Below, piece after piece: positions 2,845 through 26,622 of a DNA stretch of 64,000 nt (positions are counted from its first letter, which is position 1; each line of letters opens with the position of its first letter). Under the pieces are notes generated by a model, which saw only the letters and a program-made list of their open reading frames with translations, was not told the origin of the DNA and did no database searches. The position numbers and the translations under genes are program-made. Source of the stretch: Lepidodermella squamata (Eukaryota; Animalia; Gastrotricha); contig JBLDXI010000010.1 in the NCBI GenBank assembly GCA_047495785.1, positions 1,116,001 through 1,180,000 of the forward strand, given 5' to 3'.

Positions 2845-5800
2845 ATGGCCGTTGATGATCAGGTTGCTAATGTTTACTCGGTTCTTTTACTTAACCCTCT
2901 TGTTTATGCCGCTGTAGAAGCTGAAACTCGCCAGTCTCTTGATCGATGATGCTGTTAATGGGCGAGATTTCCCTTTCCGGGACGATCCTAAATCTCTTTG
3001 GTACTTCAATAAAATATTTTGTCCTTTGACAACAAATTTTGTTTGTTAAGGTGGTATTCTTTCTACAACAACACTGTCGCGAATTTTGTGAACAACTTCG
3101 CCATAGTCTTACTGCTGGGGCTAGCTATTTTTGAAGATCCGGCATCTTGCGATTATTGCCGCCTGCCAGTTTGGGTATAGTTTTTGGCTCCCCTTTATCC
3201 CTCCAATTAAATAATTTAAAATTTATGGCAGGCTCTTGTATTCTGGGAAACAGCATGCTTATTGGAGATAACTTTCCATTTGTTCGTCCGACTTCGATTT
3301 TGCGGTCTTACAACCTTCATAAAAGATCCAAAAAACATCATTTCACTGACATGCATTTTGGTTTGCCTGGTTGATATGATTGTTTGGTCCGCATTCTTCC
3401 GACCTGCGATTCCTCTGACTGGCCTCTATCCACAACGATTTTCCCGTATTTTACGCCCAATTTTCGTCATTAATGCGTCTGAAAATCGGAGGGTGAGTAC
3501 AAATTAGTCTTAATCTTCATTTGGGTCTCCTTTCCTTGAATAGATACGACGTGTTGTCAGATGCATTCGATCGCTGATCCGAGATGTCACCCCGATTTTT
3601 GTCCTATTTTTCATCATAATCGCAGTTTTTGCGCTTATTTTTCAAAAAATCTTCTCCCAAGGCGAGAAGCTGTCATTTTTCGACGGAAGAATTCCCCCGA
3701 CTCCCTACTTCCAAGACTACTTCGACTCGATGTGGGATTTATTCATCTATGTTACTACATCAAACAGCCCAGATGCAATGTAAGTCATACATTTTGATCA
3801 TCGAATGGGAGAATGATATTGATTTTCTCCAGGCAACCGGCTTACGATCAATCAGGATGGTACTCATTGATGTTCATTGTCTTTCTTGCCATCACTCTAT
3901 GGGGAGTCATGCCGCTTATTCTGGCCATAACATATAACAGCTATTTGCGATACCTCAAGGTATGTTTAGGGTTTAGCTGATCGTGGTGAAATTTGGAAAT
4001 AATGATTTTGTTCAAAGGACCAAATCACGCTTAGTGTGAAACAGAAGAGGCTCAAGTTGAAAAGAGCCTTTGCAATCCTAAGCACTCCTGACGAAGAAAG
4101 CGGCTCGAATGTCGTGACCGTCGAAACATGGCAGAAAATCGCTGCTCTTGTGTTGCCAGACAAAGATGGAGACTATCGAAAGCTTATGTTCCAGATCCTA
4201 GACACAAGCTCGTCGAATTCATTGGACCTAGGTGAATTCTTGTACCTGAGCGATCTCCTGAACATCGATATAAGGAGGGCCCAATCTAAGACCCATATCA
4301 TCGAAACTATGATGCCGAGGATCTACGACAGCGAAATCAGCAAGCGAATCCGCCGAATTGTAGTCCATCCTTTCTTTAGCTACGTTTTCGACATTCTCAT
4401 CATCGCGAATGCTGTGATCCTCGCAGCGTCTTCAAAAGAAATCGTTAGCGCAACTGAATGGGCATTTCTTGTCCTATTCACATTTGAAATCCTTCTCAAA
4501 GTCTATGCTTCCGGGCCACTGAGCTTTATCACGAAAGGATGGAACATTTTCGATTTGTTACTGGTCGTTCTTGCGTGGTCTGCTTCGATCGCAGAGGTGG
4601 TAGAGCCCGATGTGAACGATGTCGCTGTACTCTATGATCTAGTCATCACAATTCGAGTACTCAGAGTCTTCCGAATCATCTACAGCATTAAACAATTCGT
4701 TGTAATTGTCAACACGTTCCATCACATCATTCCCAGCGTTGCGGCTATTGTCACCCTTCTTCTGTGTGTCTACTACATGTTTGCCATTCTTGGCATGATG
4801 GTATTTGCTGGGGTTATCAAGGACGATATTCACCCATGGGAGCCAGGATGGGATCATTGCGGTAACCCTGATATTATAGGAACGGCCTACGCGAGTGCTC
4901 ATTACTGCAAGAACAATTTCAACAGCCTAGCCCTATCTTTCATTGTCATGTTCGACCTAACTGCCGTTAATAACTGGCATCGTAAGTTTTGATTAGACAG
5001 AAAGAACCTTGATGATAATTACGGTTTCACAAAGTTTTTGCCGAGGCTTTTACCCTTGCGACGAATAAGGCCGCTCGAGTTTACTTCATCAGCTTCTATT
5101 TCGTTGTTATTTTCGTTCTGTTGAAGTGAGTATTAAGATCAAATGATAGTCATTAGTCATCAATCATTCTCTTTTTCAAGTATTTTCGTCGCTTTTGTAC
5201 TCGAAGCTTTCATCCTTCAGTACAAAATGTTTCAAGGCGAGCAAAAGGAGTCTAAGCTGAGACTTCATGTCGCTAAATTTCTGGATACTGTCTCGGGTCG
5301 AAAAGCTGTGGAAACCAATGTTTCTCACTCGATTCTAGGCGGCATTGTCAACACTGAGGAAGCCGATGCGGTCGGAGGCCACCAATCCCATATAGAATGG
5401 ACTGTGGGTGATGGTCTTGGCATCAGTCTATGGGGCCCAAGTGCAGAAGAAGCTAACTACGGCTTTGTCATGCGAAATACTTGTAAGCTTTATTATTTCT
5501 GGTGAATTCTTTTAATTCATTTAATTTCAGACCGAAATGCGGATACTCTGATTGAGACTATGCTTTTCGATGAAGAAGAGGACGAAGAGGCCGAGCGCCA
5601 ACGGGAGCAGGCTGAAGCACCTCGGAGCTCTGACTCCCAATCAGCCAGTGGACCGCCATCTGGAGGCTCAAAACGGCTCAGGGCGACCTCTTCTGTCTGG
5701 AGGCGAAGCGATTTAGCTTCCCACACAATTTTCAACCAGAGAACACCTCCTGTTTCACCACAGGTTCCAACTTCCCTACCTGTGACGGCTCAGCTATCAA

Positions 5801-5907
5801 GTCCACCTGTGTTAGCTGCTAGGATGTCTGAAGAAGCGACATCGCCCTCAGTCTTAGAGATGGTCGGAGAAGTTGTAGCCTCTGAATTGAAAGAGGATGA
5901 GAACTAA
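2845..5907 (+). CDS. TPCN3: Two-pore channel, TPC3-like (10 exons)
   Basis: Spliced product has LASLLIDDAVNGR, LAIFEDP, RFSRILRPIF (S4-I), pore I TTSNSPDAMQPAY, an EF-like linker, S4-II RVLRVFR, CGNP..YCKNNFN, pore II VNNWH and LLNIFVAFVLEAF. NSPD and YCKNNFN favour TPC3 over TPC1/2. Nine short GT-AG introns. Confidence 0.88.
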
Positions 5908-6548: not shown

Positions 6549-6677
6549 TTCATGTGATGAATGAATTTCTCTGCCTTTTGGAGTTCCTTCTTTGTATACA
6601 GTGTTGCTAAGACACGTTTTGAATAGATGAATGGTTTATTGAAATCTAGCACCACGAAATGAGAATTAAGGAGTCTA

Positions 6678-7142
6678 CTAGCTATCGGCATTTCGATCAG
6701 ATACGAAATAAGATCCTAGCCATGATGAGACTGCCCCAGATTGAGAGGACCATGAAGTTGTCACAGAGTAGGATGATCTCAAATTGAGTATTGTCCTCAG
6801 CCAACTATTCCAAGGAGACTCTGTCGATGGTCCTGGATAGTCTGCATCGTAGTAGTAAGGATTAGGTGCCCATGTCGGTCTTACAATTGGTAAGCCAGTT
6901 GTATCTTGTAAATCGTAGACGAGATAACTCGCGCATACACAAAAGTCTTGAGGTTCTGCGAGGCTTTTATTGCATTGCGTCCACTGCGCTTGGTAACACG
7001 TCGTCAAACAGTCGCAGTTTATGCCGAGAGAGTAGTACGACGAGTAATAAGCAAGTTTCAAGCATCCGATAAAGCAGTTCGAGGTGAGAACAAGGGCAAA
7101 ATAAACGAAGGCAGCAACCATTGGTAGCAGCATGAAAAACAT
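6678..7142 (-). CDS. Unrecognised signal-anchored Cys-rich protein (paralog 2)
   Basis: Same 8-Cys spacing (CDCLTTCYQAQWTQCx10CVC) and a PT(W/YVW)AP tail motif as 6000-6548. Confidence 0.75.
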   Translation of the reverse strand: MFFMLLPMVAAFVYFALVLTSNCFIGCLKLAYYSSYYSLGINCDCLTTCYQAQWTQCNKSLAEPQDFCVCASYLVYDLQDTTGLPIVRPTWAPNPYYYDADYPGPSTESPWNSWLRTILNLRSSYSVTTSWSSQSGAVSSWLGSYFVSDRNADS

Positions 7143-8011
7143 GAAGGATTATGAAACAGCAGATTGCTTAATTCGTCATTTATACGAGGAGTGAGACGTA
7201 GTCTTTCAATAATTATGAAAAGACGCGATACATTAAAAACAAATGTTATTCAACTGAATTTGTGATTCAATGGAACGTAGGCGTAAAATGGCGTGAATCA
7301 ATAATTGAGTGCTCATTTTTTCCACAAATTTTCCTCGTTTTTTTGGCCGCTGAACTTACCCACAGGTCAAAAAACGTCTGGGCACGCCCCAGTTCTGACG
7401 GGTGGACTTAAGGCATCAAGACTTAGGACAACTAAACTCAAAGAATCATATATATGCCTATGTAAAATGCTCTTGCCGAACGTTGAAAAGATCTTTATTT
7501 AGAAACAGGCAACAGGCCATGACTCGAAAGCATATCTTGGTATTCAATACATAAATAAATAAATGAATTAACGCATGTTTCAGTTCAGATGGAGGATGAT
7601 TTCGCCTATGAATCGCGTCGTAGAAGTTGGGATTGAGAGACAGCCTTTCATTTTTTATCATTGGCACGGACAGATTTAATGAATTTCTTTCGCATTTTTC
7701 TTGTTTTGCGTCCACTTCTGGGTTCGGTAGCGAGAAATCGAAGAATATTCGATCAATAGAACGGTGAGTAAAGGGCAATGTACTGCGATTCGAGGTACAA
7801 AATGTAGGCGAGGTCGATGGAAGCTCATCGAACAGCATCATTGAAAGCGAAACCGCCCAACAACTGCTTGGAATTCGGCCTTCATACGCAAAAATACAGT
7901 TGTTCAAGTTTGTTTTCATAAAACGCGATTCGTTGAAAGAAAAACGTGGTTTTAATGAAAAGTGATTCGATGGAACACAAACGGTGAAACAAAATACATT
8001 CAGTGATTTCT

Positions 8012-8974
8012 TTATCGACTACTCGTGCTGTTACCAGTGGCGGCGCCGTGACGAAACATGAGCAATTTAGCCTGGCGTTTGCCGCCGGTTCTTACCGAGT
8101 TCTTCTCAGCCTCCCCGCTGAAAATCGTCGGGCGGCGCTTATTCCCGGAATAGACTTCCTTCCGCTTCTGCAACGCGTCGTGCTTCACCTTTTGATCTCG
8201 CTTATTTGTTAGGAAGGAGTTGTATTTTGCCGAGAAGACATCGCCGTTATACGGCTGGTTGTTCGGTGAATTCAACCGCTCTTCAAGAATCGCCGAATTT
8301 TTCTGTTTCTGCTCCTCAGCTAACTGCCGCGCTTGTTCTTCGAGGAAAAACTGAGCCACTGTCATTTTCTTCTCAAACGAGTCAACGGTGTCATTGTCAT
8401 TATCTCGCCGTGGGATTAATGGCTGTCGTGTTGTTGAGCAACTGGGTGCCACTGGAGTCATGGGCGATTTCGCCTCGGAACTCGATTCATCTTCAATGGA
8501 TGATCGCCTCGTGTTGGTACTTGCCGTTCTCGCTACCCCACTCAAATGCAACATATTCCGGCCGATTTGTCCGAAATGGCCCCGCGTGGACATCATTGAG
8601 AACTGCCGCTTGTGTCTTTCCTTCGCATTTTTGCTTAGATCATCGCTGTTGGCGTAGCATTTTCTGAACAGTTTAGTCCGTGTTCGGATTATGAAAGCAA
8701 CAATGAGGCTGAGGATTAAGATTAGAAGTAGAGTTGCGCCGCAGATTACGCCGATGCTGTAATTAGTGAAGTAATAATCATCCGGCTCAGACTGGAGTAG
8801 GTCTGTTGCAGTAGTTGTTAGGCCAGTATTAGCGCGGAGTAAGGCTTTTGACGACGAGACGAGTGACGCGACAGGATTTCTCGTAGTCCTACCGTTCTGC
8901 TTACTACGTTTTGTCGCTTTTTTCGAGCCAGGTTCTGCCGCCAGTGGAACGAGGATAGTAGACGTTAGCTGCAT
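8012..8974 (-). CDS. Single-pass membrane protein, array member 1
   Basis: S/T-rich N-terminus, TM helix, RQFSMMSTRGHFGQIGRNMLHLSG, DVFSAKYNSFLTNKR, AKLLMFRH. First ATG is 8974; the ORF track starts at a TTG at 8992. Confidence 0.8.
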   Translation of the reverse strand: MQLTSTILVPLAAEPGSKKATKRSKQNGRTTRNPVASLVSSSKALLRANTGLTTTATDLLQSEPDDYYFTNYSIGVICGATLLLILILSLIVAFIIRTRTKLFRKCYANSDDLSKNAKERHKRQFSMMSTRGHFGQIGRNMLHLSGVARTASTNTRRSSIEDESSSEAKSPMTPVAPSCSTTRQPLIPRRDNDNDTVDSFEKKMTVAQFFLEEQARQLAEEQKQKNSAILEERLNSPNNQPYNGDVFSAKYNSFLTNKRDQKVKHDALQKRKEVYSGNKRRPTIFSGEAEKNSVRTGGKRQAKLLMFRHGAATGNSTSSR

Positions 8975-9650
8975 TTCAAAGTGCACTTTCAATGAATGGT
9001 TGCGAATGATTCGCTATTGCAGACATTGGTAGGAAAAAAAACTATACCGATGAAACCACACGGGTGTGATTAATTATTAGTCGCATCGAGAATGAGGTGT
9101 GAAAATGCGCTCTATGAATATTTCGGCTAAAATCACTGTTCCGTGCTTCAACCCACGCGTAGCGGCAACTTCGTCGCGCTCGATTGAATCAACACTACAG
9201 GTGTGGCTCGCGTGACGCGAATCGCACATAAATTTATGGTAATTACCATCGCCTCAGGTCGGAGAACACATCATCGAGTCATCTTCTTTTATCATAACCC
9301 ATTTCTTAAAATGAATTTTTTCGAAATAATCAGCCATTTCCTGTCTGAGTTGAAATCCCGCGGGAACTCCTGAGCATTGATTTTACATTTGCGATTCCTC
9401 ATGCATTGTTAATTCATGACTAGGTCCTGTGCGGGCCCACACGCGGAATAACAAAACTGTATATTTACACAGACACAGACGAAGAAAAACACTGCACCGA
9501 AATTAGCAATTCCCCTGTATATTCATCACTTTATTACTTCTAAGAATAAAAGATCATTAAAAAGTAATCGATAACTCGGGAATTGATGGGGTTAAAAATC
9601 CATCAAAACCTAAGAGTCCTCAAACGGAACAGAAAAATAAAAGTGTTGAG

Positions 9651-10634
9651 TCATTTTTGAGGACCTTTTGAATCCATGGCATGGCGGAACATAAGAAGCC
9701 TCGCGTTTCTTTTCCCCGGTTCATGAGTCATACTTCCTCTTCTCTTTTGAGACAGGCCCTTCCTCCGGCCGATCGACTCTTGCCTCTTCATATAGCCACG
9801 CTTACTCTCCAAGAAGCTGTTGTACTTCGCTGTGAAAGGGTCTTCATTGAAATGGGAGAGCTTATCATGCGGCTCAGCTACTGGGTGATTGACATGCTTT
9901 TCCTTGAGTTTCTGCTCGGTAATTTTCGCAGTCTCTTCTTCCAATTGCTTCGCACTTTCCCGCAGGAAGAACTCAGCCGCCGTGAGCCTTTCTTCAGTCA
10001 ACCGCTTCGGGGTGTAAGTCCCGCCGCTCGAAGAAACCGTGCTGGTCGCAGTCCCTAATCGAGGCCGGTGGGCGGGAAGAGCAAGGAACAAATGGTCATC
10101 TACGTCGAGACTTTTCGGACGATTGAATATCAATAGAGCAGCTCCGTTATTGGAATTTGACGGGCTAGCGAGGTTAAGGTAGCTTTCATTCGGTTTTATC
10201 GATAGACTCCTAGGTCTTGATGGCGCTGCGACTGCAACAATGCCACTGACCTGCAACATCTGCCTGCCCAACTGGCCGAACTGAGATCGCGTCGCAAACA
10301 TGCTGTACTGCCGTCTTTGTCGATCTTGAGCCGAAGTTCGTTTGAAAAGGCAAATTTTGTAACGGTACATCGCAGCGGCCATAACGCCGAGCAGGATGAG
10401 GAGCAAACAGGAAGCACCGATTACGACGCCGAGCGTGAAGTACGTCAAAGCCTCGTCTTCGCCAAACACAGGTATTTCAGCGGGCGGTCTATCACTCTCT
10501 GTGAGCTGGACCAGAGGTTGTACAACCTCGATGCTGGGAGGATAGGTTGTAGCTGCTGAGGGTGGCGTTACTGTCCTCCGCGTACGAGGGCGCCTTGTAA
10601 CAGTTGAAAATAATATCGTTGAACTCGAGGCCAT
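9651..10634 (-). CDS. Single-pass membrane protein, array member 2
   Basis: TM helix, RQYSMFATRSQFGQLGRQMLQVSG, DPFTAKYNSFLESKR, ARLLMFRH. Closest to member 1. Confidence 0.82.
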   Translation of the reverse strand: MASSSTILFSTVTRRPRTRRTVTPPSAATTYPPSIEVVQPLVQLTESDRPPAEIPVFGEDEALTYFTLGVVIGASCLLLILLGVMAAAMYRYKICLFKRTSAQDRQRRQYSMFATRSQFGQLGRQMLQVSGIVAVAAPSRPRSLSIKPNESYLNLASPSNSNNGAALLIFNRPKSLDVDDHLFLALPAHRPRLGTATSTVSSSGGTYTPKRLTEERLTAAEFFLRESAKQLEEETAKITEQKLKEKHVNHPVAEPHDKLSHFNEDPFTAKYNSFLESKRGYMKRQESIGRRKGLSQKRRGSMTHEPGKRNARLLMFRHAMDSKGPQK

Positions 10635-12162
10635 GACGTCTCATTTATATTACTAAAAGGTTCTAAAAGGGGAAAACAAGAACGAAGAATTTGTAAAGAA
10701 GATAACTCTGGCGATTTCACTGCTGCGATGCTTTTGGTGTTGGCTGCAAGAAGATGCGTGAATGTTTGCGCAATCGATCACCTTGGTTCACGATTGATTT
10801 TGGCGCAGTAATTTGTGCACATAATATTTCTTGCCAATTATGTGTGCGTGTGATTAATTCTCAGTGCAAGCGTTTTCTTTCTTTACACCTATTTCTTAAT
10901 GAGTTTCAGTACGCGAAAAATGCGCGTGAGTATTTATGATGACATGCTGCCTATGAAAACTCAAAAATGACATAAACTCAAGTTGTCCAAGCTCTGAGAT
11001 TGAGACGAGGCACGACAGAATCGTCTGGAGGCTAGGGGATACGGTTACCTTTTTCTTCAGGAATAATATTCCCAAGTTTCCGCAGTTTTCGCATATGATT
11101 CTTCGAAGGTGAGGTTACTAGATACGATGTCGAAATTTTGGAGTAAAGAACAGGGAAGCGTCCTGGCCCCCACCTTACCCCCAACCTCAGGAAGGCTGAA
11201 AAACCGCAGGTGGAAGAGGATTCCTTACTTCGACTGGAAACTAAAAAACCCTTGCTTCAGAATCCAACTTCGCGCTTCGAAACTTCGCAAACTGGTCACA
11301 ATTATCTTCGGACGAATTGGATTAATCGATAGGGCAATCCTCGCTAATTGCCTCTACTGAAAACGATAAGTGAACCTTCTTTATTGCTGTGGAATTAGGG
11401 CCAACAAATTTCCAGAAATTTGTGATACAAAATTGCATTTTCGACTGCGAATCTTTAACATTTAAAAACTCAAACATGTCTCACTCAGAGGAAATACGTC
11501 ATGAATCAGAGAAAAACATTTGCCTTGCGGTATGATAATGTGATCTAAGTGGTACACTCATCAGTCACATGGGACGCGCGCATGGGAATTATTAAACAAA
11601 TATGTGGATTTTTATGTTAACTGGGGAAATTAGTAAACTAATTTGACCAAGATCCAATCCCTCTATAGCGACATGATACTTGTTCTTATAATCCTATTAC
11701 TAAAATCAATCAATGAAACGAAAAGCTCATAACGCGATTCAATAGTACAGATTGAGTCTGCTGCGAATTCTACATTCAAACAATGGTCTGAATCAACAAG
11801 CAGTGGTAGTAGTGTCGTCGGTTTTTTCAGCATTGCCGTACCATATCCCGGAGTATTCAGTCGATTGGTATCACAAAATCCCTTATGGCCGTTATTTATC
11901 CGCCGCACGCGGTTTGCTTAATAAATTTTTGATCGGATTAAGAGCTCGGAAAAAATGCGAGTAATTACACTCCAAGCAATGACGCATCGATCCTTATTTC
12001 CCCATCAAAATGTGGTGTAATTTAGTTCGCAGCGCGCATCCTAAGGACAAGCGCTCGGGGCGTGTAGTGCAGTGTAAAAAACCGAAACAAATTTCAAGAC
12101 TTGTCAAGCTGCGGGAAAAAAGTCGTTTTTCACATACTAACAATACTTTATTTTTTTGTAAT

Positions 12163-12924
12163 CTAACGAGAAAAAAATGGGTCTATCTCTGAGGTCGACA
12201 GCGAGGGCTCAGTTTGCGTGTCCCGGTCGATGCTAGCTACGCGCTCGCTGTAGCGGCGTTGATGAAAAATGGGCGATCTCATTCGCGGAAAGTGACCTGA
12301 ATCGATGCTTGTGACTCTGTTAGCTTTCCACGACGCTCGACGTTGCTGCGCTGACATCATAGCGATTTTGCTCATTGAATCGGCCGGCGTGCTTGATTGC
12401 GCCGGGCTGAGTAGGGTCTTACAACACTCTTCGTGGTTGGATATAAGTTGCCGGTAATGAACCTCAAGATCGGCAATCGGCGTTGAGAAATCCACGGTTG
12501 ATAGCGGTGATAGCGGGTTAGTTGGGAACGGAACTGAGCTGTGGTCTCCTGAGGGATGGAAGAACCCGCTGAAACCCGCGATTTGCCGGCTCATCCCGCC
12601 GAAGTAAGCCTTTGAATGGTTAATCGTATACTTTGCCTTCTTCTCCTGGCGCCGTTTCCATTTCTCCCAAATGCATTGAATCAAATTGACGAATGATATG
12701 ATGAAAAGAATGAAACCAACGGCGATTAAACAAGGAATTCCGAGCTGATAAACTAAGCTTGTAGGCTCTTGCGTTGTAGGGATGTATTGCGTTTCGATGA
12801 GGTTTGAAAGCGGCTCTTCTGCGAGATTTACAATGGCTTCACTGGGTACACTCAGAAAATCGACTGTTTTGGGCGTTGTTGTCGTGCGTCTACGTCGTCG
12901 AACTGTGGAGTTGACATTTGGCAT
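12163..12924 (-). CDS. Single-pass membrane protein, array member 3 (C-terminally truncated)
   Basis: TM helix and KAYFGGMSRQIAGFSG. Ends DPFFSR* where paralogs continue D(P/V)FxxKY. Confidence 0.75.
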   Translation of the reverse strand: MPNVNSTVRRRRRTTTTPKTVDFLSVPSEAIVNLAEEPLSNLIETQYIPTTQEPTSLVYQLGIPCLIAVGFILFIISFVNLIQCIWEKWKRRQEKKAKYTINHSKAYFGGMSRQIAGFSGFFHPSGDHSSVPFPTNPLSPLSTVDFSTPIADLEVHYRQLISNHEECCKTLLSPAQSSTPADSMSKIAMMSAQQRRASWKANRVTSIDSGHFPRMRSPIFHQRRYSERVASIDRDTQTEPSLSTSEIDPFFSR

Positions 12925-14631
12925 CAAAAGAAGCGAACAAGGCGCCAGTTGCGTGCGGTCAGTAACTATTAAAACTAAAACCTAAAGATGATAGAGCTTA
13001 TTAACAGAAAAACCCCAGAGCTGGACGTAAGCTATGGATTACAAAAATTGCGGTACAATATTCATATAGGTTATAAGCCCTTCCTGATTATTTCCTAAAC
13101 AATATATCATAATGTGAAGTAGCCATATTGCTTGCAATAATTTGCTTTCTCGCCTCTGCGCGTCCTACCTGCAGCTCTTCTTGCCGTGGGCTCATGCTGC
13201 TAGAGTTAATTGCTTGTTTACTACTAATACCAGTAAATCAAATATGTGTGGTCATGTTTTCCTATACCTGCTTATTCCAGTGTGAGAAATATCATTCGGA
13301 CGAATACTGACCGCAATATAAATAGAAAATTGCGAGCGCTCAAATAGCAGAAATTCGAGGGCACAAACATCGGAATAAATTGAATCATTTACCGAATGAA
13401 GGGTTTATTTAAATTCAGCTAACGCCTTCGGTTCAGCCCAGGGACTCCTTAGAGAGTTGAAAATTGTTTCAGCACGTAATCTTATTGCCAGCTGTTGTTT
13501 GTTTACTAACGATTCACTTGATTTTATGATTTGATAGTTTGAGTACTCAACGCGTACAGAAGCTTGGTTTTACACCTAAAGTTCGTCATACCCTCGCTGT
13601 GTTGTGTTGATAAACAAGGACAAAATTTTCCATTCCCAGATCCTGTTTAATGTTTATCAGAGAGAGCTGTTGGTTTTGTTATTACAAAAACGAAAATAAA
13701 AGCACCAGCCAGGATTGGGCTTTGGGCGCATCAAAAATATCGTTATATTATATCGTATATATACCGATTTAGAAGGCTCTGCCTTATAATTTTATCAATC
13801 AACCCGCAAAAAATACTATGGTACCAACAATTTCAGCTGTCGTCATTTCAGTGCCTATTTCATGAAGATTTTAAATTTCGGAATCTAAGTTCGCTATAGG
13901 ATGTCCCCGTCATCCTCATAATTCCGGAATATTGAGCTGGTTTTATAAGCTCATCAGCTTGAATGATGGTAAACTGGAAACAAGCACCGCATTATTCTGA
14001 AAATCTACATTCTCTGTGAGAATACAAATAAAGTAAAGCTAGGCGAACGGGGAACTTGTTCTTTAGCATTGAACGTTTTTTTTCAACGCGCATTTCCTCA
14101 AAGCTTAGTGAATGGCTTAACAAGTTTTTAGGAAGCCGGTAAAATTTCCAATAATATTCCGAAATAATATACGCAATAGTGCTCAGTGACAGGAGTCATG
14201 CGGATTCGGCAACTTGGAACATTTTAGCGATACGAAACATAACCGAGTTCCAACAATCTCCTATAGAACGATTTTTTTCAATGTTATGTCAGCACGCGCG
14301 CTCCGATCCTGCAACCGAAGTAGAATGATCTTTCGAATTCTCGTTCGTTAATGCCACAGCTATTTCACTACAAAACCCACATTTCGCTTGATCAACATCA
14401 TGGGCAAAGAATTACTTTACTATGACCCCAGGGGCTTCCCGTAGGGCTTGACAGCCTGACCCAGCCTTCACCGACGTAGTCAATTTTAATATCCTCCGAA
14501 AATTTTATTAAGAAACGTGATTTTTTCCAGAATAACACCAAAGAACGTTGAAAAATAGCTGTGAAATCATATGTCGTTTGTAATTGAAATAAACTTGGCC
14601 ACGGGAAAAATGGCATAGGTACGGTACAAAT

Positions 14632-15630
14632 CTAATGTTGGCCTTGCGCGCCAGCTGTGAAGGCATACATCAGCAAACGACCACGACGTGCGTGCGATTT
14701 CTCTTCTTCAGGGACGCGGGTTGACCGCTTCCGCTTCAGAGAATCGCGATGCTGCTTCTCGCGAAGAAACGTGTAATACTTGAACTCAAACGGCGTGTAG
14801 CCCATAGGAATTTTATCTGGAATATATCGACCCGAACGGCTGAAAGATGACGCTGTAGAGTCAGTCCTGCCCAACGCAGCCGACCATCTCGCGCGTTTCG
14901 CATCTGCCTGGACTTTGTCGATGGAAGATGAAAGCTGATCTGTGTCAGCTGCAGCTACGTTAAGAGCCTCCAAATCGCTGCCGTAGCCGTAGCTGCAACA
15001 AGCCCCGTAGTTACCCATTTTACTAGCAGCGCAACACGCGAGTGGGCTGTCATCGCTGCTCCCAGGTCGGATGAATTCTATATCACCAGAAGGCGCGAAT
15101 CTAGTCAAACACCCTCCTGAAGAGCTGTTTGAGTTATCGAAAGGCCTAGCGCTCTTATCATCTGGCGAGTCGAGGGATTGGTAGAGTTTTGCATAGTTAA
15201 CACTAAGCGTTGTTTGACGATGAATTTCCGTGATTTCATTCACTTGACAGACCCGGGTTGAAAGACCGCTGAGAGTAGCCATTTGGCGTGACATTCCGCC
15301 GAAATAGCCTCGACTGACAAACATCGAATAATGGCGACTCTTTTTCTGAGCCTCCTCACTAGCTTTCCGCCAGTAGCTCTCGAACATGTTGCCGAGAAGG
15401 ATCATAAGGAGGACGATGGCTAGAGCTATGAGACAGATAATCCCATATTCAGCTGCTAGTTTTGCAGGGGCCTGTTCGTCGTGTGGCTCAATCGGGATAT
15501 TCAGCGACGCACGGCGTGTGGCTCTGGAGGATTTCGAGGTAGAGGTAGCTTCTTCAAGGTAAAACAGGACGATATTAGGCTGGGTCGTAGCGATGCGCCC
15601 CACCAAATCGAGCGAAGGAGAGGCTTTCAT
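14632..15630 (-). CDS. Single-pass membrane protein, array member 4
   Basis: TM helix, HYSMFVSRGYFGGMSRQMATLSG, PFEFKYYTFLREKQHR, GRLLMYAF. Probable 5'UTR intron (gtaact...tttag) just upstream of the ATG. Confidence 0.82.
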   Translation of the reverse strand: MKASPSLDLVGRIATTQPNIVLFYLEEATSTSKSSRATRRASLNIPIEPHDEQAPAKLAAEYGIICLIALAIVLLMILLGNMFESYWRKASEEAQKKSRHYSMFVSRGYFGGMSRQMATLSGLSTRVCQVNEITEIHRQTTLSVNYAKLYQSLDSPDDKSARPFDNSNSSSGGCLTRFAPSGDIEFIRPGSSDDSPLACCAASKMGNYGACCSYGYGSDLEALNVAAADTDQLSSSIDKVQADAKRARWSAALGRTDSTASSFSRSGRYIPDKIPMGYTPFEFKYYTFLREKQHRDSLKRKRSTRVPEEEKSHARRGRLLMYAFTAGAQGQH

Positions 15631-17159
15631 AAACTCCTAAACAATTAACAACAGAGTTATTGGCTTTAACGAGTGTAATATCGGATGATTAGTTACCTTT
15701 TCGAGGGGTGATGTAAAATGTGAAGCTTCTCTATTCCATAATGCTTGCGTTATGCAGTACTAGAGTAAACATGCAATGATGAATTCCGGTGTTTATTATT
15801 CTATAGGTGTATTTGACGCGCTCGTTGGCATGGTCGATCATATTTTGCGCGCTGTATGTCAATCATGTCGTGAATTCGATACTACGGTGTAAACGCTACG
15901 CCGTCTAGCACGTGGCAAACACCAATGCAAACATACCTGGTGAATTTCGAATTAAGCGATCTCAAGCGGAGAATGATAAGCAAGTCACAGTCTATCTTAA
16001 CTCGCAGACAAATTTGTGTTCGAAGAGGTATTATTCATATAACGATTTCCCAACTTCTCATCTGATTCTGCAGAACTATCCCAATCGAAAAAAATTAATT
16101 TTTCATCTTAGAAATGAAAATAATAGGATTGTTTCGTTATATCGTTCTATCGATATACCAGGATTCATCATACAGGCATAGGCTCGATTCGTTAGGTGAA
16201 TCACTATTAAGACCGCATAGTTCTCGCATGTAGTAGTCCCATTTCTCAGTTCATCGCAAAGATTGCACGGATCACAATGTTGTGATTAATATCATTAGAT
16301 GGCAAGAGCATGGACTCTGATTCTGAATTATTGATGAAGGCTGAATTATTCACGGCTAAAACATGTTTCACCGCCCACCGCCCCCAGCTTTCGATGATTC
16401 CCACCAGTTGGAGTGGGATAAGTGTTTTTTTACAGTTCAGCATGTATTGAGTTGATGAGGTGTGATCAGTGCCGGTCGTAAACATCGCCGATATATCGAT
16501 CAGTAGGAAATGTAGCCCCCGGTTGCAGATTGAGCTCACACGAAAAGGAGAACGGAGAATATATGTGATTTCCCTCATTTCAAGGATAATCAACACCAGG
16601 AGCAGTTTGAATGTTCAGTTTCGACAGATTGTTTCAGCATTTTTTACAGACGATAAGTATTCATCGCAAAAACGCCACACATGGCACACTCGAGACCACT
16701 TTACGTTATCAATCTTCCAAAACACCAAGTTGTTTTGAAACCCAGTAATATTTCAGCCAATGTAACCGCAGGTCCACATGTCCATTACCTTCAAGAAAAA
16801 AGTTTGTTCTATCGCGACCGTTTAGGGTTTAGGTCATTCTGCTGACAAAGCATGAATCCTGGAGCTGCCAGAAATGGGGAAAATATGCTGTATTTCCTGA
16901 AATCTCTTGGGATTTCCAGCAACAGTACCAGCCAAGCGAGAAAAGAGAAAATTGTGAAGAATTTTCACCAAACATATCCGGCACGAAAAATGTTTGCATA
17001 CAGTTGTCGAAAATCCTAGAGAAGGTCGATAATCCTAGGTACATGCTGGAAAATCTTTTTGAAAAACCTCGAAAACCTGGAAGAGTTCGAAAAGCCTTAT
17101 TTTGAAAATCGTTCGAAGCATAGTTTTATGGTTAGTAGGGCTACAGAAAGTAAGGATGT

Positions 17160-18340
17160 TCAGTAAAGGATTTTCTTTGAGTTTTTGTTATCGGCATGGT
17201 AATCACTAAATGCATACATGAGCATTCTAGCTCGGCGATGTGCTCTCACTGGGGTTGCATTCGTCATTCCTCTTCTTTTAAGGCGCATTCGATGATGAGC
17301 AGCCCGTTCACGCTGCTGCTTGTCGTGAAGGAACAGCTGATATTTCCGAGTGAAAACATCAACATTAGCACTGCTAGCTGCTATCGTAGAGTTGAGACTG
17401 CCAGGTTTCCCTGTCTCGAAGCTGCCGTAGTTTGGCATAGTTTTCGGCCGCCTTACTGCCCAAGTCACTCTGCGCTCATCTGCCGTCATTTCCGTTATCG
17501 GTTTCAGTATCACCGGCGTAGTGCGGAAAGCTTCATTCACAGCATCCGCGCTTAGTGTTGAATCATTGATGAAAACAGATGGGCCTGGCACTCGGGTAAC
17601 GTGATCGAGGTCGAAGTACGTCGAAAAGTTGTTGTACGGATTTTCGTACAGATTTGCGTGTGACGTTGTTGCGTCAGAGTTGACTTCATTTCTCGAACAT
17701 GAGGGTAGTAAGCTACTGCTGGGGTTTGAAAGCTCCGTAGTCAGTGGTGTGTGGGCTGAGTAAGAAGGGACAGTAGATTGCAGTTGGATAGTAATAGCTT
17801 CATCGTCATCCCGGGAAGACTGGTTCGCGAGATTGCCGTAGGAAATTTGCGACTGAGTGCTTACAACGGCAGTCCGAGTCGGTATCATAACACCACTGAA
17901 ACAACACATTAGCAAGATGGATTGATAGCAATATTTAAAGCAAACCTGACATGCAGCATTTGGCGAACAATCATTGCAAGATGCTCTCGAGTTGCTGTTG
18001 TATACTTTTGCTGGAACCTGTGCTGATTCTGGGGGTATTCATTTTGAAAGTAGGGAAGCGTAATCCGAAATCGTTTCAAATAATCGATAAGTAATAGGCT
18101 GATAAGCAGAACCATCAGAGTGCACAGTGTGAAGATAAGCGCGAGCCAATAGACCAGGTTCTCATTTGCCGCTAAATCAGCTGAGCTAGTTAGCACATCT
18201 CGGTCTTTCAAAATGTTGTAATTCGACTCAGTCGCGCCAGGTAGTAAAGCTGACGAGACGAAAATAGGCTCGGCGATTTTGTACCTCGCCTTTGGGTAGT
18301 CCTTTCTGAGAAAATCTTTGCTGACAATCTCGCTCGCCAT
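17160..18340 (-). CDS. Single-pass membrane protein, array member 5 (two coding exons, intron 17896-17945)
   Basis: Removing a 50-bp GT-AG intron joins the two ORFs and restores RQMLHVSGV. Also DVFTRKYQLFLHDKQQR and ARMLMYAF. Confidence 0.8.
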
Positions 18341-19592
18341 TTATCTATAGCGCCATTGCTGTCGATTTGATCCAAATATAAGCCATTAAATGAGTTCAGT
18401 CCTAAAAAAAGTATTACGACAATCATGTGATAGCTAGCTGGTTTCACGGAAGGGCCCCATTAAACGTCGTGCTTTTCCGGTTCCTTGATTATTGAGCTTA
18501 TAAAAGCAATAAAAGTTGCAAGTAGGTGGATTTGATAGCCATCGTGCATCTCTAATATCTAAATTTGAGACAAGTGAGTTATATGGCCGATTTCTTACGC
18601 GCGATCTATTTTACAACGAGGCTCGTCTGAAGCAGTCTGCACTATGCTTTTATTTTATCGAATTTTCATTAGTCGAACCACTTTTTTCGGACGAGTGTAT
18701 TCGCGAAATAAATCAAACTAGCGTGATAACGGTCCAGATCCTTATTTGATAAAATTCGCATTGTCGGTGGGTTATTATTTTTTATTTGTTGTTAGTGTCA
18801 TTCTATATTTTTTTCAATCAACCCTAGAGATTTTATAGAGACGCTAAGTAACGCCGAATGTTAGATTCGCATGCTTGTTTTTTTGTTTTTATTTGCGATT
18901 GAAGAATTAATTATTAATATAACGAAAACAGTGATGCGCATCTACAACTCTTATTCATAAAACGATATCATGAGGTTTTAATGCTATAAGACCAACTATA
19001 GACAGAGACGCAAGCAAATTGATATTTGAAATGTATAAAAACAACAAAACAGCTCATCATTTATTGAGTTTTTCAATAGACTACTGAAATAGGCTCAGAA
19101 AAATAGGAATTTTCCTAATTTGACTAGAAAGATGTTATTTTCATCACTAAATAAGTGTTGGCCGTATGTCGCTATGCATTGTGGCTTCTCTTAGCGATTT
19201 GAAACCTTTGAATCCAGTAATCCGAGGAACTAGGTCGCTCCAGCATCTATTAATGTATTTTCACTGCTAAATATGGAAGGAATGCCTTGATAATTTGCGT
19301 GGTCATCCGAATTTGAAGTTTAACGCAAAGCTTCTTTTGCTCCAAGAGCAACGAATAGAAACGAATATAAAAGGGAGACTATCATTTTGTTGTTTCATTG
19401 TTTAATTTTGTCTTTCTCGCCAGGTATATGCTTCATGAAGTTGGTTTAACAGCAAAGCAGCCAGACCATAAAGACCATTTATTTTTCTAACATCATATAT
19501 CATATATTTGCATAAAACTCATCAGAATCTTCACGAAGAACAGAAATGTTTCTTCATTCCCTGAGTTAATCTGTCTTATCAGCTATCAGCAA

Positions 19593-21026
19593 TCAGTTCA
19601 AAAATCCCTTATGGATCGGAATTCGCAGGGCATTGATCAACATAGTCGTCTGCCGCTGATCTGGCTCATCGGATAACGGCGAGTTGCCGTTCGCGAAGTG
19701 AGCATAACGTTGGCCGTGCTGCAAATATTGGTTGGAGGGTTGACCATCTATGTCTGTCGCAGCCGAAACCATCTTCCGCCTCTTCAACGTCGCCCTGCGT
19801 TGGCTATCACGCCGCCGTTTCTCAGCGATGAACATTGCATATTTCCGCTGGTAGACGTCATTCTTCAGTTTCTCAATCGACATACGCCGCGAATGTTGAT
19901 GGTGATGATGGCTGATCCTAGGATTCTCAACGCCCCGCTGGGCCGATGCCAAATCATACCAGGACGTAGTTCTTGCCTCTTGGTCGTCGGAAGAATCCGC
20001 GACGAAATGACTCAATTCAGTTAGCACCGATGTCGACTCAACTAAGCGACTTTGAACATCGGAGATTGAATTGCAAGAACCGCAAGAGCTGACAACTAAT
20101 TCTGGGAGAGACTTCTCGCCAGGTCGAGTAGCTGCTACGCTGAGGCTGGAAGACAGAACCCGATGCGGATTGATCATTTCCACCATGTTGCTTTCGAATT
20201 TCGCGATATTCTCCATTGCCTGGGCTTGCGATACTAGTTTCTGCTTTTCAATATAGTCGGTCAAATCAGGGAGGGGCGGCAAAGCGTTGACCGGGAGGCA
20301 GGAGAACTGTATTCCTAGAGACTTACCACGTGCTAAGGATTCGTGACTAATTGAGTTTTCCGACGTTCGCGGTCCGAGGAAACGTGATGGAACCACAGGG
20401 CTCACGTAAACCTTCTCCCGTTCCTTGAAGAAAACTATTTTTACATTCTCCGGAACGAGAGACTGCGTGGAGGTCAGACTCTGCTTGTGATTACTCGACG
20501 GGATTGACGAGCCATATGATGGACGGTAACTTGAGAACTCTGATGAAGTTGTTAGGGATGATTCAGGCCTCGAAACGTCCTTAGATTTCTGCAGCAAGCC
20601 AGATTGATGCTGGACAATTCGGCTCATCTGCCACATGTGGTTGCCGATCCCAGTGAGAGTGCTTCCAGCGACAATTTCCGGCCTTTCATTCTTTCCCTTT
20701 TTCAACCGCCGTTTCTCCTTCATTTCGTCGTAGATTCGAGTTAAACGTCGTTTGCATGGGTGGTATAGCATGAAGACTATCCCGCAGAGTAGGACGACTC
20801 CAACTAGGGCGAACATCACCATGACTAGTTCGAACATTGGCTCTTCATGGTCGTGGCTTTCCGTCGCGTCATTACGTTTTTCGGTTGAAGCAGATAGCTT
20901 GCTTCGGGTTTGTGGGTATTTAGAGGTGACTCCTTTGTAGCGGCCTGTCGATTGGGTAGTTCTCTCGGCAATCAGAGTGATAAGCAGCGTGCCATCAGAG
21001 GAGCTAGCCTCTTCAATTTCATTCAT
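19593..21026 (-). CDS. Single-pass membrane protein, array member 6
   Basis: TM helix, LTGIGNHMWQMSR, DVYQRKYAMFIAEKRRR, TMLINALRI. Confidence 0.8.
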   Translation of the reverse strand: MNEIEEASSSDGTLLITLIAERTTQSTGRYKGVTSKYPQTRSKLSASTEKRNDATESHDHEEPMFELVMVMFALVGVVLLCGIVFMLYHPCKRRLTRIYDEMKEKRRLKKGKNERPEIVAGSTLTGIGNHMWQMSRIVQHQSGLLQKSKDVSRPESSLTTSSEFSSYRPSYGSSIPSSNHKQSLTSTQSLVPENVKIVFFKEREKVYVSPVVPSRFLGPRTSENSISHESLARGKSLGIQFSCLPVNALPPLPDLTDYIEKQKLVSQAQAMENIAKFESNMVEMINPHRVLSSSLSVAATRPGEKSLPELVVSSCGSCNSISDVQSRLVESTSVLTELSHFVADSSDDQEARTTSWYDLASAQRGVENPRISHHHHQHSRRMSIEKLKNDVYQRKYAMFIAEKRRRDSQRRATLKRRKMVSAATDIDGQPSNQYLQHGQRYAHFANGNSPLSDEPDQRQTTMLINALRIPIHKGFLN

Positions 21027-22931
21027 CTCTCGAATAAAAATTCTCTATCAATGAGAGTGAGTATCAATGCGGCGATCAAGTCAGCCGTAAAATCAATGGG
21101 ATTATGACTAACTGTTGTAATCAAAAATGTTTGAAAATCACTGATTAGGTGAGGGTTCATGCACTTAGATTTGACTGTCGAAAAATAACGTGATGCGGGT
21201 GTGCCGGGTGAAGGGATCGGGCTAATAAACTGAGACGCGAGGTTAATAAATCCGGCGCGTCATCATCCAGGCGACTTTGTTTGCAGTCACTCAGGTGATC
21301 AAATCGATTTTCCAAACATTTTATGCGTAAATCTAAATTACAATCATTCAGTGATCAACTCTACGGCGATTCCATGAATTGAGGTTTCAAAGGTTTCACG
21401 TCAGTGTCTTTGGCAGGATTAGGTTGATATTAGGTTTTAATGGTAAAGACAACTGAATGAAGAGATAGGGCTCTGCTTTTCTTGGTTTCCTATTTCTAAA
21501 TGTGCAATCAATCAAACAAATGCAGTTGTCCATAGCTGATTAGGTCTCCGCGGACCTTGGTGCGATAAAATGACGATATTTCTTAGAGTGAACTCTATCG
21601 CATTGCGCACTCAAGAAAAATCAAGTTAAGCCGCTTCGCAATACAGTGTAGCCCGTTAAAAATAGGCCATCAATTGAACTTCATTTATTGTCTGCGCAGT
21701 TATTTCACTTGTTCTTTATGTATCGGCGATGTACAATGATGTGTTCACAAATCTCGTCATGGGCCAGGGTGCAAATTTGACCGTTGCCCTGGTTGCCATA
21801 TGCGCTAGTATTTGTCATATGTCTCCGCTCGGCAGATTTTGTCCATCAAATTGGCAAATATCAAAGAACAGAGTCAGGGATTAAAACACGCGTGATCGTG
21901 ATAATTAGCTGAAAACAAAATATAAATATAGATGTTGGGAGCCAAATCCTGAAGCTGAGTCATGGGAAATCCTCTCAGCTTTCATCAGTATAAACCTACA
22001 GGTGCGAGAATGTGTTTTCACAAACATTTCCTTTCGTGTCGAGAGTGGAACGCTTTGAAGAACATTCGATCAAAACATCTAGAGCTTTGCCACTCGTTCC
22101 TCCTGAGACAATTTTCTCAGAGTATTTGGAAATTCTTCCGCAGAATGAAGACGCAATGAGTGCTGAGCGCTGCCAAAACTGACCGGAACACAAGACAACT
22201 TTTGTACATGCATTTTGAGTTGATTAAATTGTCCACTCAGAAACTTTGGATGAATTCTATCTTTTCTATTTACAAACAGTCTATGGTATTTGGGCAGGAT
22301 TGTATGTCAAATTTTTCGAATTTTCTGCCTTCGATACACATATGTTCATCATCGTGCGCCGTACTTATGGAGCATGTTTTAGGGGGAATTCTTCAAAATC
22401 AGTTCGCTCCGATCTTATTTATGGTTGAAGTCTCAAGTAATTTTAGGAAATTATTCATCCTCGGCAGCTCCAGGGTCCACTATCGCAACCTGAGCATTTT
22501 AATAATCTATCGAGAGACACAGAATTATACACGTTTAATTCCGATGACGCTGAAAGAGCCGGATGGTTGGATGTGACGTCGGTACATTTGACGTCGACAT
22601 AATTGCCTAGCCGGATATGCTGAATAAAATATGGCACTTATACAACGTCAAAAATTGTATTTTTCAGACAGGACAATGGGTACAATTCTACTGTTAAGTC
22701 AATATCATCGAAAGGGAAAAACTAGTTTATGAGGGCTGACGCGAAACAGGTAAATCTGTTCAGCTGATATGTTCTGATTCTTGATTCTGTGTTCCGGAAT
22801 GTTAAATCCTAAATATGAAGAAAAACAGCGTTAAAGCTTCCTTCTAGATGTTAACACTTGGAATATTATAAAAAGCAAGTGTTACTTCAAATAAAGCGAT
22901 TTATTAAACAATTCAAAACATTTAAAAGCTG

Positions 22932-24440
22932 TTAAAACAAAATCTTGGCCAAATTAATACGCATTGCATTCAAAAACATCCGGGTTTTGCCTTCAGCATG
23001 ATCAGGGTCTTCGTTATCTTCACGATCTCGACGACTTCTCCCGCGAACCGCCCCTTCATTGAAAGTTTTCACTCTCGTCAGGTGTCGCTTGTAAACCAAA
23101 TTGTGCCCAACAGGAGGTTTAATCACTGTACTGCAGCCAGAGCTATTGCAAGCTCGGAGCTTTCGCTTTGTTTTCTCGTCAGCAGCTTTTTGCCGCTTCC
23201 GTTTGTCTTCCTGGAACAACCGGTACTTTGAGGTAAAAACGTCCTGATGACGGCATTGTTTAGTAGTAGCCAAGGTGGCGCAATACAAACTCTTGTTAGG
23301 ATCGGTTTCCATTCGGAAACATGTCGAATGGCGCCGCTGATTATTCATAATATTAGCCAAACTCGAATGATAAGCATAAGATCCATCGGGCTTCAGGAAA
23401 GTCTGGCAAACCGGGTAACTCGCTTTCCTAGGGTATCCGCCACACTCAACGCCATAATCTGAAGATGCGCGGGAAGATTCGAGGCTGTTAGATGATACAG
23501 CAAGGGTTGTAGGGCGTAAGGCTGAATTGTTATCACTCGTAACAGAATTGAATGACCCATACTGAGTGCAAGTTCCATGGCCACTGCTGAAACTTTGCTG
23601 GCTGGGCGGGAGAAGGCTATCAGTTGCAGCTCGTGCCTCTGAAATTCTCGATAGAGTTTTATTCAACGGAATTCTAGTTATTTCATCGCTCGATGTGGCT
23701 GTATCGATTGGTATAGGTGTAGAGGGCTCCACCGTTGGGGAGTTCGGGGCCTCTTGACTACTTAGCAGCTTCTGATTCTCAGCCGCGAATTCGAACTTTC
23801 GATTCGGGGATCTTGACTTATCGCTTAGACTCGCAAGTGAGTCGAAAAGATTGTCGCTCGAAGATAGGTCATTTGCATAATGGAGCTCGCACTCTGTTTG
23901 GTAAGAAATCGAGCAGCTCTTCGCTAGTTTAGCGAGAGGAGCAGTTGTCCGGCGGGTTTTTCGAGGTATCGGCGGGGTATCACATACAGGATTATCATAC
24001 GCCTCGAGCTCGACAGGGTTTCGCTTGATTTCAGCTAAATTTGTAACCTCGGGCTTCTCAGCTAGCACAATTCCTTTTGACTTGATGTGATTAGTTATAA
24101 TTTTGCCCCTTCTACTTCTCGATGAATAAGATTTCCGCCGGAAGTAGCCAGATTCCCTGAGGTAAACGATGTAGTTGAATAGGACCATAAATCCGATGAG
24201 AGCTAAAAAGCTGACGCCGAAAAGAGCGACGATAACTATGGTTTGAGGTTCGCCCATTCCTGTGAATGGGTCCTGAGTAGTTGTTGCATTTTGGATAGAT
24301 GAATTCGAGGCTGGCAACGTGCGAGGGAATTGAGACGGCGCTGAAAGCTGAATACTGGCTTTTGCATTCATGAAGGAAGAAGACGCCGGGGCGATGTGAA
24401 CTGTTCTCACAGCAAGTCTGGCTAGGGGATGTTGAATCAT
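22932..24440 (-). CDS. Single-pass membrane protein, array member 7
   Basis: TM helix, long Ser-rich tail, DVFTSKYRLFQEDKRKR, RMFLNAMRI (like member 6). Confidence 0.8.
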   Translation of the reverse strand: MIQHPLARLAVRTVHIAPASSSFMNAKASIQLSAPSQFPRTLPASNSSIQNATTTQDPFTGMGEPQTIVIVALFGVSFLALIGFMVLFNYIVYLRESGYFRRKSYSSRSRRGKIITNHIKSKGIVLAEKPEVTNLAEIKRNPVELEAYDNPVCDTPPIPRKTRRTTAPLAKLAKSCSISYQTECELHYANDLSSSDNLFDSLASLSDKSRSPNRKFEFAAENQKLLSSQEAPNSPTVEPSTPIPIDTATSSDEITRIPLNKTLSRISEARAATDSLLPPSQQSFSSGHGTCTQYGSFNSVTSDNNSALRPTTLAVSSNSLESSRASSDYGVECGGYPRKASYPVCQTFLKPDGSYAYHSSLANIMNNQRRHSTCFRMETDPNKSLYCATLATTKQCRHQDVFTSKYRLFQEDKRKRQKAADEKTKRKLRACNSSGCSTVIKPPVGHNLVYKRHLTRVKTFNEGAVRGRSRRDREDNEDPDHAEGKTRMFLNAMRINLAKILF

Positions 24441-25190: not shown

Positions 25191-26622
25191 TCAAAACATG
25201 TGGGATGTTTCCAATTTCGCTGTTTTGATGAACAATCTAGCTTGCTCAGCTATAGAACGGAGGTGATCCAGTACAATTGCGTTGCTTTTGATAAAACCCT
25301 CGCGGTGATAAGGCAGGCCGTGTTTTTTCGCGAATTCTACCACTATCGGGGTAAGTTCCCGGTATCTGTGGCGGGGTAAACGAGGCATCAGGTGATGTAA
25401 GACTTGATATTGAAGGCCGCCGTGAAACCAGTCGAGCCATGCTGGTGTTTCAACATCGAGAGTTGTGATAAATTGATGAGCGACCCAATTATGCTCCGAT
25501 TCGAACTCGAAAACGGGCATGCTGACGTGAGACAGGTTGACTTGAATTGAAGCCATAGCAACGGCACAACTGGCTAGGGTTGCCCAGAGAAATAGAAGCG
25601 GCCAGGTGGGGATACACGATAGCAAATAGCTCTGCCACACTGCGAAGATGCAGAGGCCGAACCATTCAACAGGACGGGTCTGGGACGGAAAGGTAAAAGG
25701 CGGCCTCTGAAAAAGATAAACTAGGAATGAAATCAGTCTCATGCATAAAGTTTAAGTGAAATACCAAAGATTTCGCGATGAGCCCCAGCCGTGTGTAGAA
25801 AACCATCCAAGCGTAGTAAAGGTAGTGCTGAAAAATTGTGTTGAACTGGACAAATTTATTGAAGCGCAGCGTCGCCTTGTGGAAAGTTGAGTAAATGCCC
25901 TTGAAAAAGCGAGGTGACGGTGTAGTGAACGGCATCATTTGGATAACCGGGTCGTGTCTAGGATCATTCGTCATGAGATGATGAATGTTGTGGCGACTCT
26001 TCCACCAGGTTTGTGAAAGACCTCCGAAGACGCTGCCGAAAAAGCTGCCAACGTAAGAGTCGATTTTGCGGTTGTTTGTGACTTCATGATGGCCCATGTC
26101 GTGGAGGAAGAAGAAGATCGATTGCTGCCATACGAATCCCATTCCCAGCCCAGACAACGCAATAGGTAGAACGTACCATCCAGGTAAGATTTTCTCCCGA
26201 AATACCGTAAGGGAAAATGAGGCAACGAAGAATGAGAGAATTCCGAGGAAGTATACAATGTTGTAGAGAATGCTTGGTTGGAAGTAGCCTTTCTCATACA
26301 TTTCAGCTTGAAGCTTCCTGAAATCGAGTGAGATGGGATTGTTGAAGTAGCTCTCAGCCTCAGGTTCCTTTTCCTTGTCAATGACCAGCTTTCCAATGCG
26401 GTAGAGCGGCATTTGCTTCTCGATGACGCGAACTGGATGGTAGGCTCTGATTGCATCGGTCGCGTCCTTCTTTAGAAAATGCTCAATTGCTAATCGTCCA
26501 CCGGGATGACGATCCGCCCAGCTGGTCGCATCATAAACGTACAAATCGTTGACAACAAGCAACTTTCCTTGGTCGATTTCATCTTTCAGTTGCTGGAAGG
26601 AGAAATTCCGTAGGTTAACCAT
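25191..26622 (-). CDS. Cytochrome b5-fused front-end desaturase, delta-8 sphingolipid desaturase-like (copy 1; intron 25707-25764)
   Basis: HPGG heme motif; His boxes HDMGHH, WWKSRHNIHH, QVLHH; DWFHGGLQYQ; one phase-0 58-bp intron. Confidence 0.92.

Follow-up and report, generated by a model that had tools for sequence, protein, structure and literature searches.

Which proteins does a tandem array of seven genes encode in the gastrotrich Lepidodermella squamata, and how might they act? The array lies at 8012-24440 of the window, by which we mean the whole stretch of 64,000 nucleotides (nt) analysed here (contig JBLDXI010000010.1, positions 1,116,001 to 1,180,000). It consists of seven long, co-oriented open reading frames (ORFs) on the minus strand (253-502 amino acids, aa), m1 to m7, separated by gaps of 0.7-1.9 kb. 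An earlier note, made from the letters alone, had placed seven co-oriented genes here, and both the ORF list and a hidden Markov model (HMM) scan agree with that placement. The family HMM, run over the six-frame ORFs of the whole window, recovered the seven genes at E values of 1e-37 to 1e-121 as eight ORF pieces, m5 counting as two; it found no eighth member in the window, all other ORFs scoring E of at least 0.9. The window has a G+C (GC) content of 40-47% and is eukaryotic in character, with short spliceosomal introns; the published Lepidodermella squamata assembly has 43% GC (PMC11660948). On balance, we favour the explanation that the array encodes an orphan family of single-pass membrane proteins acting as a membrane-anchored scaffold or regulatory subunit. 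That m1-m7 form a real orphan family with an N-out/C-in orientation is very probable; the adaptor or regulatory mechanism is a more tentative proposal.

Similarity among the members is graded. With blastp in a proteome-sized search space, m1 matched m2 at 5e-19, m3 matched m4 at 4e-12 and m2 matched m4 at 3e-7, followed by m5-m7 at 0.008 and m4-m5 at 0.03. With an HMM built from m1-m5 alone, the scores were 32.9 bits for m6 and 24.0 bits for m7, against at most 10.8 bits among 1000 shuffled controls. Judged by these scores, the seven genes are real paralogues whose relatedness exceeds chance. No DNA-level repeats remain between the copies, so the duplications appear to be old, which fits what the earlier note had supposed. 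Trees calculated on the N-terminal and C-terminal parts supported only m3+m4 (90/87) and a group of m1, m2 and R1, a gene of the relative described below. The subgroups that had been read from the physical order therefore stood in part: 1+2 and 3+4 were supported by blastp, HMM and trees, and 3+4+5 and 6+7 drew little support from them.

Conservation is confined to three short blocks. The first is a juxtamembrane helix with the consensus R-x-[YF]-[ST]-[MIL]..R..FG..xRQM...SG, predicted to continue from the transmembrane (TM) helix; the second is a distal helix, D[VP][FY]xxKYxxF[LI]xxK, called here the KY..F helix, followed by a Lys/Arg-rich stretch; the third is a hydrophobic C-terminal motif, R[LM][LF][MIL][FYN]A. 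These blocks, and the lack of the juxtamembrane one in m7, had been noticed from the sequence and were confirmed by regular expression and alignment. The strict juxtamembrane expression matches m1-m4; the block is degenerate in m5 and m6. Six of the seven members match the KY..F pattern (D/T/H, V/P, F/Y, xx, KY, xx, F, L/I/Q, xx, K), which is absent from all remaining ORFs of the window; the exception is m3, which lacks this block and the terminal one. Two terminal variants had been proposed as separate motifs; the terminal motif is present, but in the alignment with the relatives RLLMF/RMLMYAF and MLINALRI/MFLNAMRI share columns and form a single block. An additional ..ERRx(S/T)W block is common to m3, m5 and P0001 of the relative, and is weaker in m6.

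The individual gene models carry these blocks as follows. The product of m1 (8012..8974) has 320 aa from the ATG at 8974, to which we set the start in place of the listed TTG six codons further upstream, and contains the TM helix, the juxtamembrane and KY..F blocks and a terminal KLLMF; its nearest paralogue is m2. The 327-aa product of m2 (9651..10634) has its TM helix at aa 70-88 (10371-10427), the juxtamembrane block at aa 110-133 (10236-10307), the KY..F and basic block at aa 265-300 (9735-9842) and the terminal RLLMF at aa 312-316. At 10644 on the minus strand, 10 nt upstream of the m2 start codon, an out-of-frame ATG begins an overlapping ORF of 50 codons, so that either transcription would start between the two ATGs or scanning would be leaky. 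The shortest member, m3 (12163..12924, 253 aa), keeps the TM helix and the juxtamembrane block, and its distal blocks are degenerate or lost. Its stop codon directly follows a run of seven T (12171-12177), and the next frame is open for about 50 codons (11994-12143, minus strand), ending in ..KLHHILMGK. A frameshift, a homopolymer error of the assembly or a 31-nt intron is possible at this 3' end; none of them restores the distal blocks of the family, and the enumeration of all GT..AG candidates gave no 3' intron that brings back a KY..F or RLLM block. Either m3 has lost its distal blocks or a homopolymer error is present. All three blocks occur in m4 (14632..15630, 332 aa).

In contrast to the single ORF listed for m5 in the earlier note, which is its exon 2 alone, we model this gene with two exons. 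Exon 1 (17946..18340) covers the N-terminal region and the TM helix and runs into the juxtamembrane block as far as ..VRQMLHV; a 50-nt GT..AG intron in phase 2 (17896..17945), predicted by reading the sequence, would split that block before its SG; and exon 2 (17160..17895) starts with SGVM.. and encodes the disordered tail, an RRVTW block, the KY..F block and RMLMYAF. This spliced model, like that of R1 in the relative, was searched, aligned and folded exon by exon, and introns were bridged only for checks of frame continuity. The two largest members are m6 (19593..21026, 477 aa), with a TM helix, a degenerate juxtamembrane block, a KY..F block and a terminal MLINALRI, and m7 (22932..24440, 502 aa), with a TM helix, a KY..F block and a terminal MFLNAMRI.

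Does the family exist elsewhere? The earlier note had left its proposal open to the assignment of these proteins to a known family. Pfam gave no match above its cut-off for any member, a profile search of the PDB gave 0 matches, and Atlas feature searches returned only generic small membrane proteins. A profile search with HMMER, run exhaustively on 1.84 billion protein representatives, found two matches only, P0001 (9.5e-10) and P0002 (1.3e-6). A word-index protein search with m2 gave no match, m2 itself included, in a collection that does not hold the proteins of this genome; the same search with a 12-row alignment gave nothing and missed P0001 and P0002 as well, being swamped by low-complexity words and hence uninformative, and with P0002 it returned that protein alone. 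An exact look-up of m2 in assemblies found no match, and P0001 as a query found no relative in the JGI metagenomes. On the data now available, these searches indicate that the family is lineage-restricted.

Both matches come from ENA metagenome assemblies and from one eukaryote, represented by four contigs (L001-L004, 38% GC). The blocks of P0001/P0002 read RRQFS.. / RRYSM..FCGLGRQMLQLS, DERRLTW, KYQSF and RMLMYAF / RLLMY, so that the blocks survive in a distant relative whose proteins are 23-35% identical to those of the family in the window. On the contigs of this relative lies a tandem of three family genes, R1 to R3: R3 corresponds to P0001 and R2 to P0002/3/4, and R1 is a third gene that had been split by the gene caller and is joined by a predicted canonical 55-nt intron (GTAAGT..TTTAG). 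R1 groups with m1+m2 in the tree of the C-terminal part (91/98 support), R3 and m5 (exon 2) are reciprocal best matches, and R2 is placed with either m2 or m4. The order R3-R2-R1, followed by a two-pore-channel (TPC) gene, parallels the order m5-(m4,m3)-(m2,m1)-TPC in the window. This shared order and the linkage to the TPC gene indicate that at least part of the array, and its place beside that gene, are older than the split of the two organisms.

The relative also gives direct evidence of purifying selection on the reading frames. Comparison of haplotypes across samples gave 13 synonymous and 11 non-synonymous variable sites and a pooled pN/pS of 0.23 (binomial p = 5e-4). That ratio bears on the reading that the array consists of chance ORFs or pseudogenes, for which the C-terminal degeneration of m3 could be cited. 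ORFs of up to 502 codons with motifs conserved over a deep divergence, and AATAAA/ATTAAA signals 26-122 nt past five of six stop codons, speak against it too, and we regard this reading as scarcely credible.

How are the proteins placed in the membrane? Hydropathy gives one hydrophobic segment per protein, the best 19-residue window starting at residue 61-77, which corresponds to a TM helix at about residues 61-95. It is preceded by an N-terminus of 60-76 aa with 14-28% Ser and Thr and, in three members, N-x-S/T sites, and it is followed by a long, mostly disordered tail whose net charge ranges from +7 to +22. The TM segment itself is flanked by 15 acidic residues on its N-terminal side (net -1 to -6) and 15 basic ones on its C-terminal side (+1 to +5) when the charges are summed, and these flank charges, under the positive-inside rule, favour an N-out/C-in orientation. 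A typical signal peptide was seen in no member by sequence inspection and hydropathy; m1, m2 and m6 have an N-terminal hydrophobic patch of 6-9 residues (maximum KD9 1.3-2.3) with no positive n-region.

A different reading takes the proteins for type I receptors, with a signal peptide and an ectodomain encoded by upstream exons that escaped recognition; upstream exons adding large ectodomains were an outcome that the earlier note had seen as contrary to its proposal. Possible AG acceptors are found just 5' of the ATGs of m4 and m7. However, each of the seven genes has an in-frame stop 0-18 codons 5' of its start ATG, and in the three genes of the relative this distance is 2-27 codons. In addition, m1 and m2 can be aligned with each other from their first Met onward (M..S(S)TIL), and the intergenic gaps hold no conserved ORF. 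The upstream stops and the alignment from Met argue against hidden upstream coding exons, and we consider such receptors very unlikely.

A second possibility places the function outside the cell. The proteins would then be mucin-like or glycocalyx proteins of the surface, with a functional Ser/Thr-rich ectodomain and cytoplasmic blocks that serve as sorting or endocytosis signals. The composition of the N-termini and their N-x-S/T sites agree with this, as do the Atlas neighbours of the array proteins, which are generic small surface glycoproteins (opalin, TMEM119, UL132). The relative, however, has N-terminal segments of about 24, 38 and 70 residues ahead of the predicted helix, and they are acidic, not Ser/Thr-rich, and unconserved. 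This difference indicates that the ectodomain is not the conserved part; in the window, too, it spans only 60-76 aa, and the tail holds all the conservation. The Ser/Thr-rich N-terminus described earlier is thus a property of the members in the window and not a trait of the family, and a mucin-like role appears unlikely.

Structure prediction agrees with a tail that has helices and no packed domain. The AlphaFold2 model of m2, made with the family alignment, has a long helix at residues 59-135 that comprises the TM segment and the juxtamembrane block (predicted local distance difference test, pLDDT, 72-97), and further helices at 219-248, 266-298 (KY..F, pLDDT about 90) and 309-319; the remainder is below a pLDDT of 50. 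In m7 only the helices 64-96 (TM) and 401-433 (KY..F) exceed 70, with weaker helices at 99-121, 449-462 and 481-501, and residues 122-400 are predicted to be disordered. The predicted template modelling score is 0.31 or less in both models. Pfam and these two models indicate that the family has no enzyme or other folded domain. The earlier description of one TM helix, a long tail and no enzyme domain was borne out by hydropathy, Pfam and the models.

The charge of the tails bears on another reading, in which the proteins are membrane-tethered factors whose basic tail, resembling a nuclear localization signal, is released to the nucleus by proteolysis, or binds acidic lipids or calmodulin. Every member does have Lys/Arg clusters after the KY..F helix, and the positive charge of the tails is strong. 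But there is no DNA-binding or other domain and no conserved cleavage motif, and the basis of this reading is composition alone; we judge it highly improbable.

The explanation that we prefer, a membrane-anchored scaffold or regulatory subunit, starts from the distribution of conservation. Conservation limited to three short cytoplasmic helices in a disordered basic tail is the signature of a partner-docking protein, which is in line with the adaptor proposed in the earlier note. In the proposed mechanism, the only hydrophobic segment would insert the protein as a type III (reverse signal-anchor) membrane protein, leaving the variable N-terminus of 60-76 aa outside or in the lumen and the basic disordered tail in the cytoplasm. 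Selection would act almost only on the three short cytoplasmic elements. Through its conserved helices the protein would bind a partner common to the family at the membrane, and the most likely action would be that of a non-enzymatic scaffold or regulatory subunit. Phosphorylation may contribute: the R-x-[YF]-[ST]-hydrophobic site that opens the juxtamembrane block is, by consensus only, a putative kinase site, the RRx[ST]W block fits the consensus of basophilic (PKA/CaMKII-type) kinases, and with its R-x-x-S/T and RRx[ST]W sites the tail is a plausible substrate of such kinases.

Several observations weigh against this reading. The orientation is deduced from hydropathy and charge only. The hydrophobic patch of m1, m2 and m6 could be a weak cleavable signal peptide, in which case the orientation would be unchanged. 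Disordered tails of basic composition often contain matches to basophilic kinase consensus sites. Of the three blocks, m3 lacks two and m7 one, so the blocks are not all essential. A k-mer search of the upstream regions found no shared DNA motif above shuffled sequences and hence no sign of co-regulation.

Known proteins of similar design were compared with the array proteins. The vertebrate lymphocyte transmembrane adaptors LAT, PAG/Cbp, NTAL and LIME1 have a short N-out segment that lacks a signal peptide, a single TM helix and a long, disordered cytoplasmic tail with short linear motifs as its functional sites and no enzymatic domain. The predicted layout of the array proteins is much the same, and LIME1 is among their weak Atlas feature neighbours (0.86). 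However, there is no sequence homology to these adaptors and no match to a Pfam adaptor family at E <= 1. The array proteins lack the juxtamembrane CxxC palmitoylation motif (m1, m2, m3 and m6 have a single Cys within about 11 residues after the TM segment; m4, m5 and m7 have none). Nor do they have a tyrosine-based SH2 docking array: YxxΦ or YxN repeats are absent, the conserved aromatic positions number only two (R-x-[YF]-S and KY), and their conserved elements are helices and Ser/Thr basophilic consensus sites. TMEM119, opalin, TMIE and the herpesvirus proteins UL132 and UL135 share the gross architecture at a language-model feature similarity of 0.76-0.87, but these scores lie within the range that shuffled sequences often reach, and there are no shared motifs and no supporting alignment.

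KCNE (Pfam ISK_Channel) offers a third comparison, as a small N-out single-pass protein with no cleaved signal peptide and a juxtamembrane helix that continues from the TM helix. The array also adjoins a voltage-gated-like channel gene, an association known from gene linkage in two organisms only. On the other hand, there is no Pfam ISK_Channel match, the tails of the array proteins are two to four times longer and disordered, and the linked channel is a two-pore channel and not Kv7. Membership in the transmembrane adaptors or in KCNE thus fails on all the sequence-based tests, although the architecture resembles both. As far as these comparisons reach, the family is a new orphan family with an architecture of a familiar kind.

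The channel gene leads to a further alternative, that the array proteins are KCNE-like auxiliary or regulatory subunits dedicated to a plasma-membrane TPC3-like channel, linked to its gene since before the two carrier species diverged, the linkage being kept since the products cooperate. The multi-exon TPC gene (2908..5907, plus strand; best PDB match TPC3 6v1q, 2e-65) is convergent with the array. In contig L001 the TPC gene of the relative directly follows R1, again in convergent orientation, and its exons match the exons at 2908-5904 of the window at 57-93% aa identity, so that the three family genes abut an orthologous channel gene although the family proteins themselves have diverged to 23-35%. 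The neighbours on the other side of the TPC gene differ (Metallophos and Sel1 genes in L001), and the short N-out segment, TM and juxtamembrane helix recall KCNE. Against this, the linkage is seen in one species pair only, and residual synteny is the simpler reading. The genes stand tail-to-tail with no common promoter, and in the window two unrelated genes (6000-7142) lie between the TPC gene and the array. A literature text search found no paper that reports a single-pass auxiliary subunit of a TPC, and seven paralogues for one channel lack an explanation. We consider this alternative distinctly unlikely; if it were true, two-pore channels would gain their first described family of auxiliary subunits.

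The two genes next to the TPC gene (6000-6548 and 6678-7142, both minus strand) encode small paralogous proteins, each of which begins with a TM segment and has a tail rich in Trp, Tyr and Ser; the two share the Cys pattern C..GC ... C.C..TCY.AQW..C. They have no Pfam match and no counterpart in L001, and the pair looks like an insertion between the TPC gene and the array. Beyond the TPC gene, L001 carries a Metallophos gene (purple-acid-phosphatase-like, 7165-8538, minus strand) and a Sel1-repeat gene (10460-11872, minus strand). The 64 kb of the window contain no counterpart of either gene, which indicates that synteny ends beyond the TPC gene.

Further along the window, three genes for front-end fatty-acid desaturases fused to cytochrome b5 (Pfam Cyt-b5 + FA_desaturase) lie within 33 kb, at 25191-26622 (minus strand, intron-split), 28543-30027 (minus strand) and 57619-58701 (plus strand). 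At 47424-48674 on the plus strand, the product of an intronless ORF (416 aa) has a match at E 2e-19 to the interferon-inducible GTPases of the IIGP/IRG family; a GTPase of this type is unusual in a small invertebrate. Rfam gave 0 matches on the window, and no spliced-leader or other RNA gene was seen.

As it stands, the family is one of the many orphans to be expected in any newly sequenced phylum. Its conserved place beside a two-pore-channel gene provides a specific hypothesis that is open to experiment. Gastrotrichs have hardly been studied at the molecular level, and the array provides a clean example of a lineage-restricted family in them: it is old and fast-evolving, and three short, predicted cytoplasmic helices have been kept under selection. 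The family may serve as a tractable case for the question of how disordered tails anchored to a membrane retain their short linear motifs.

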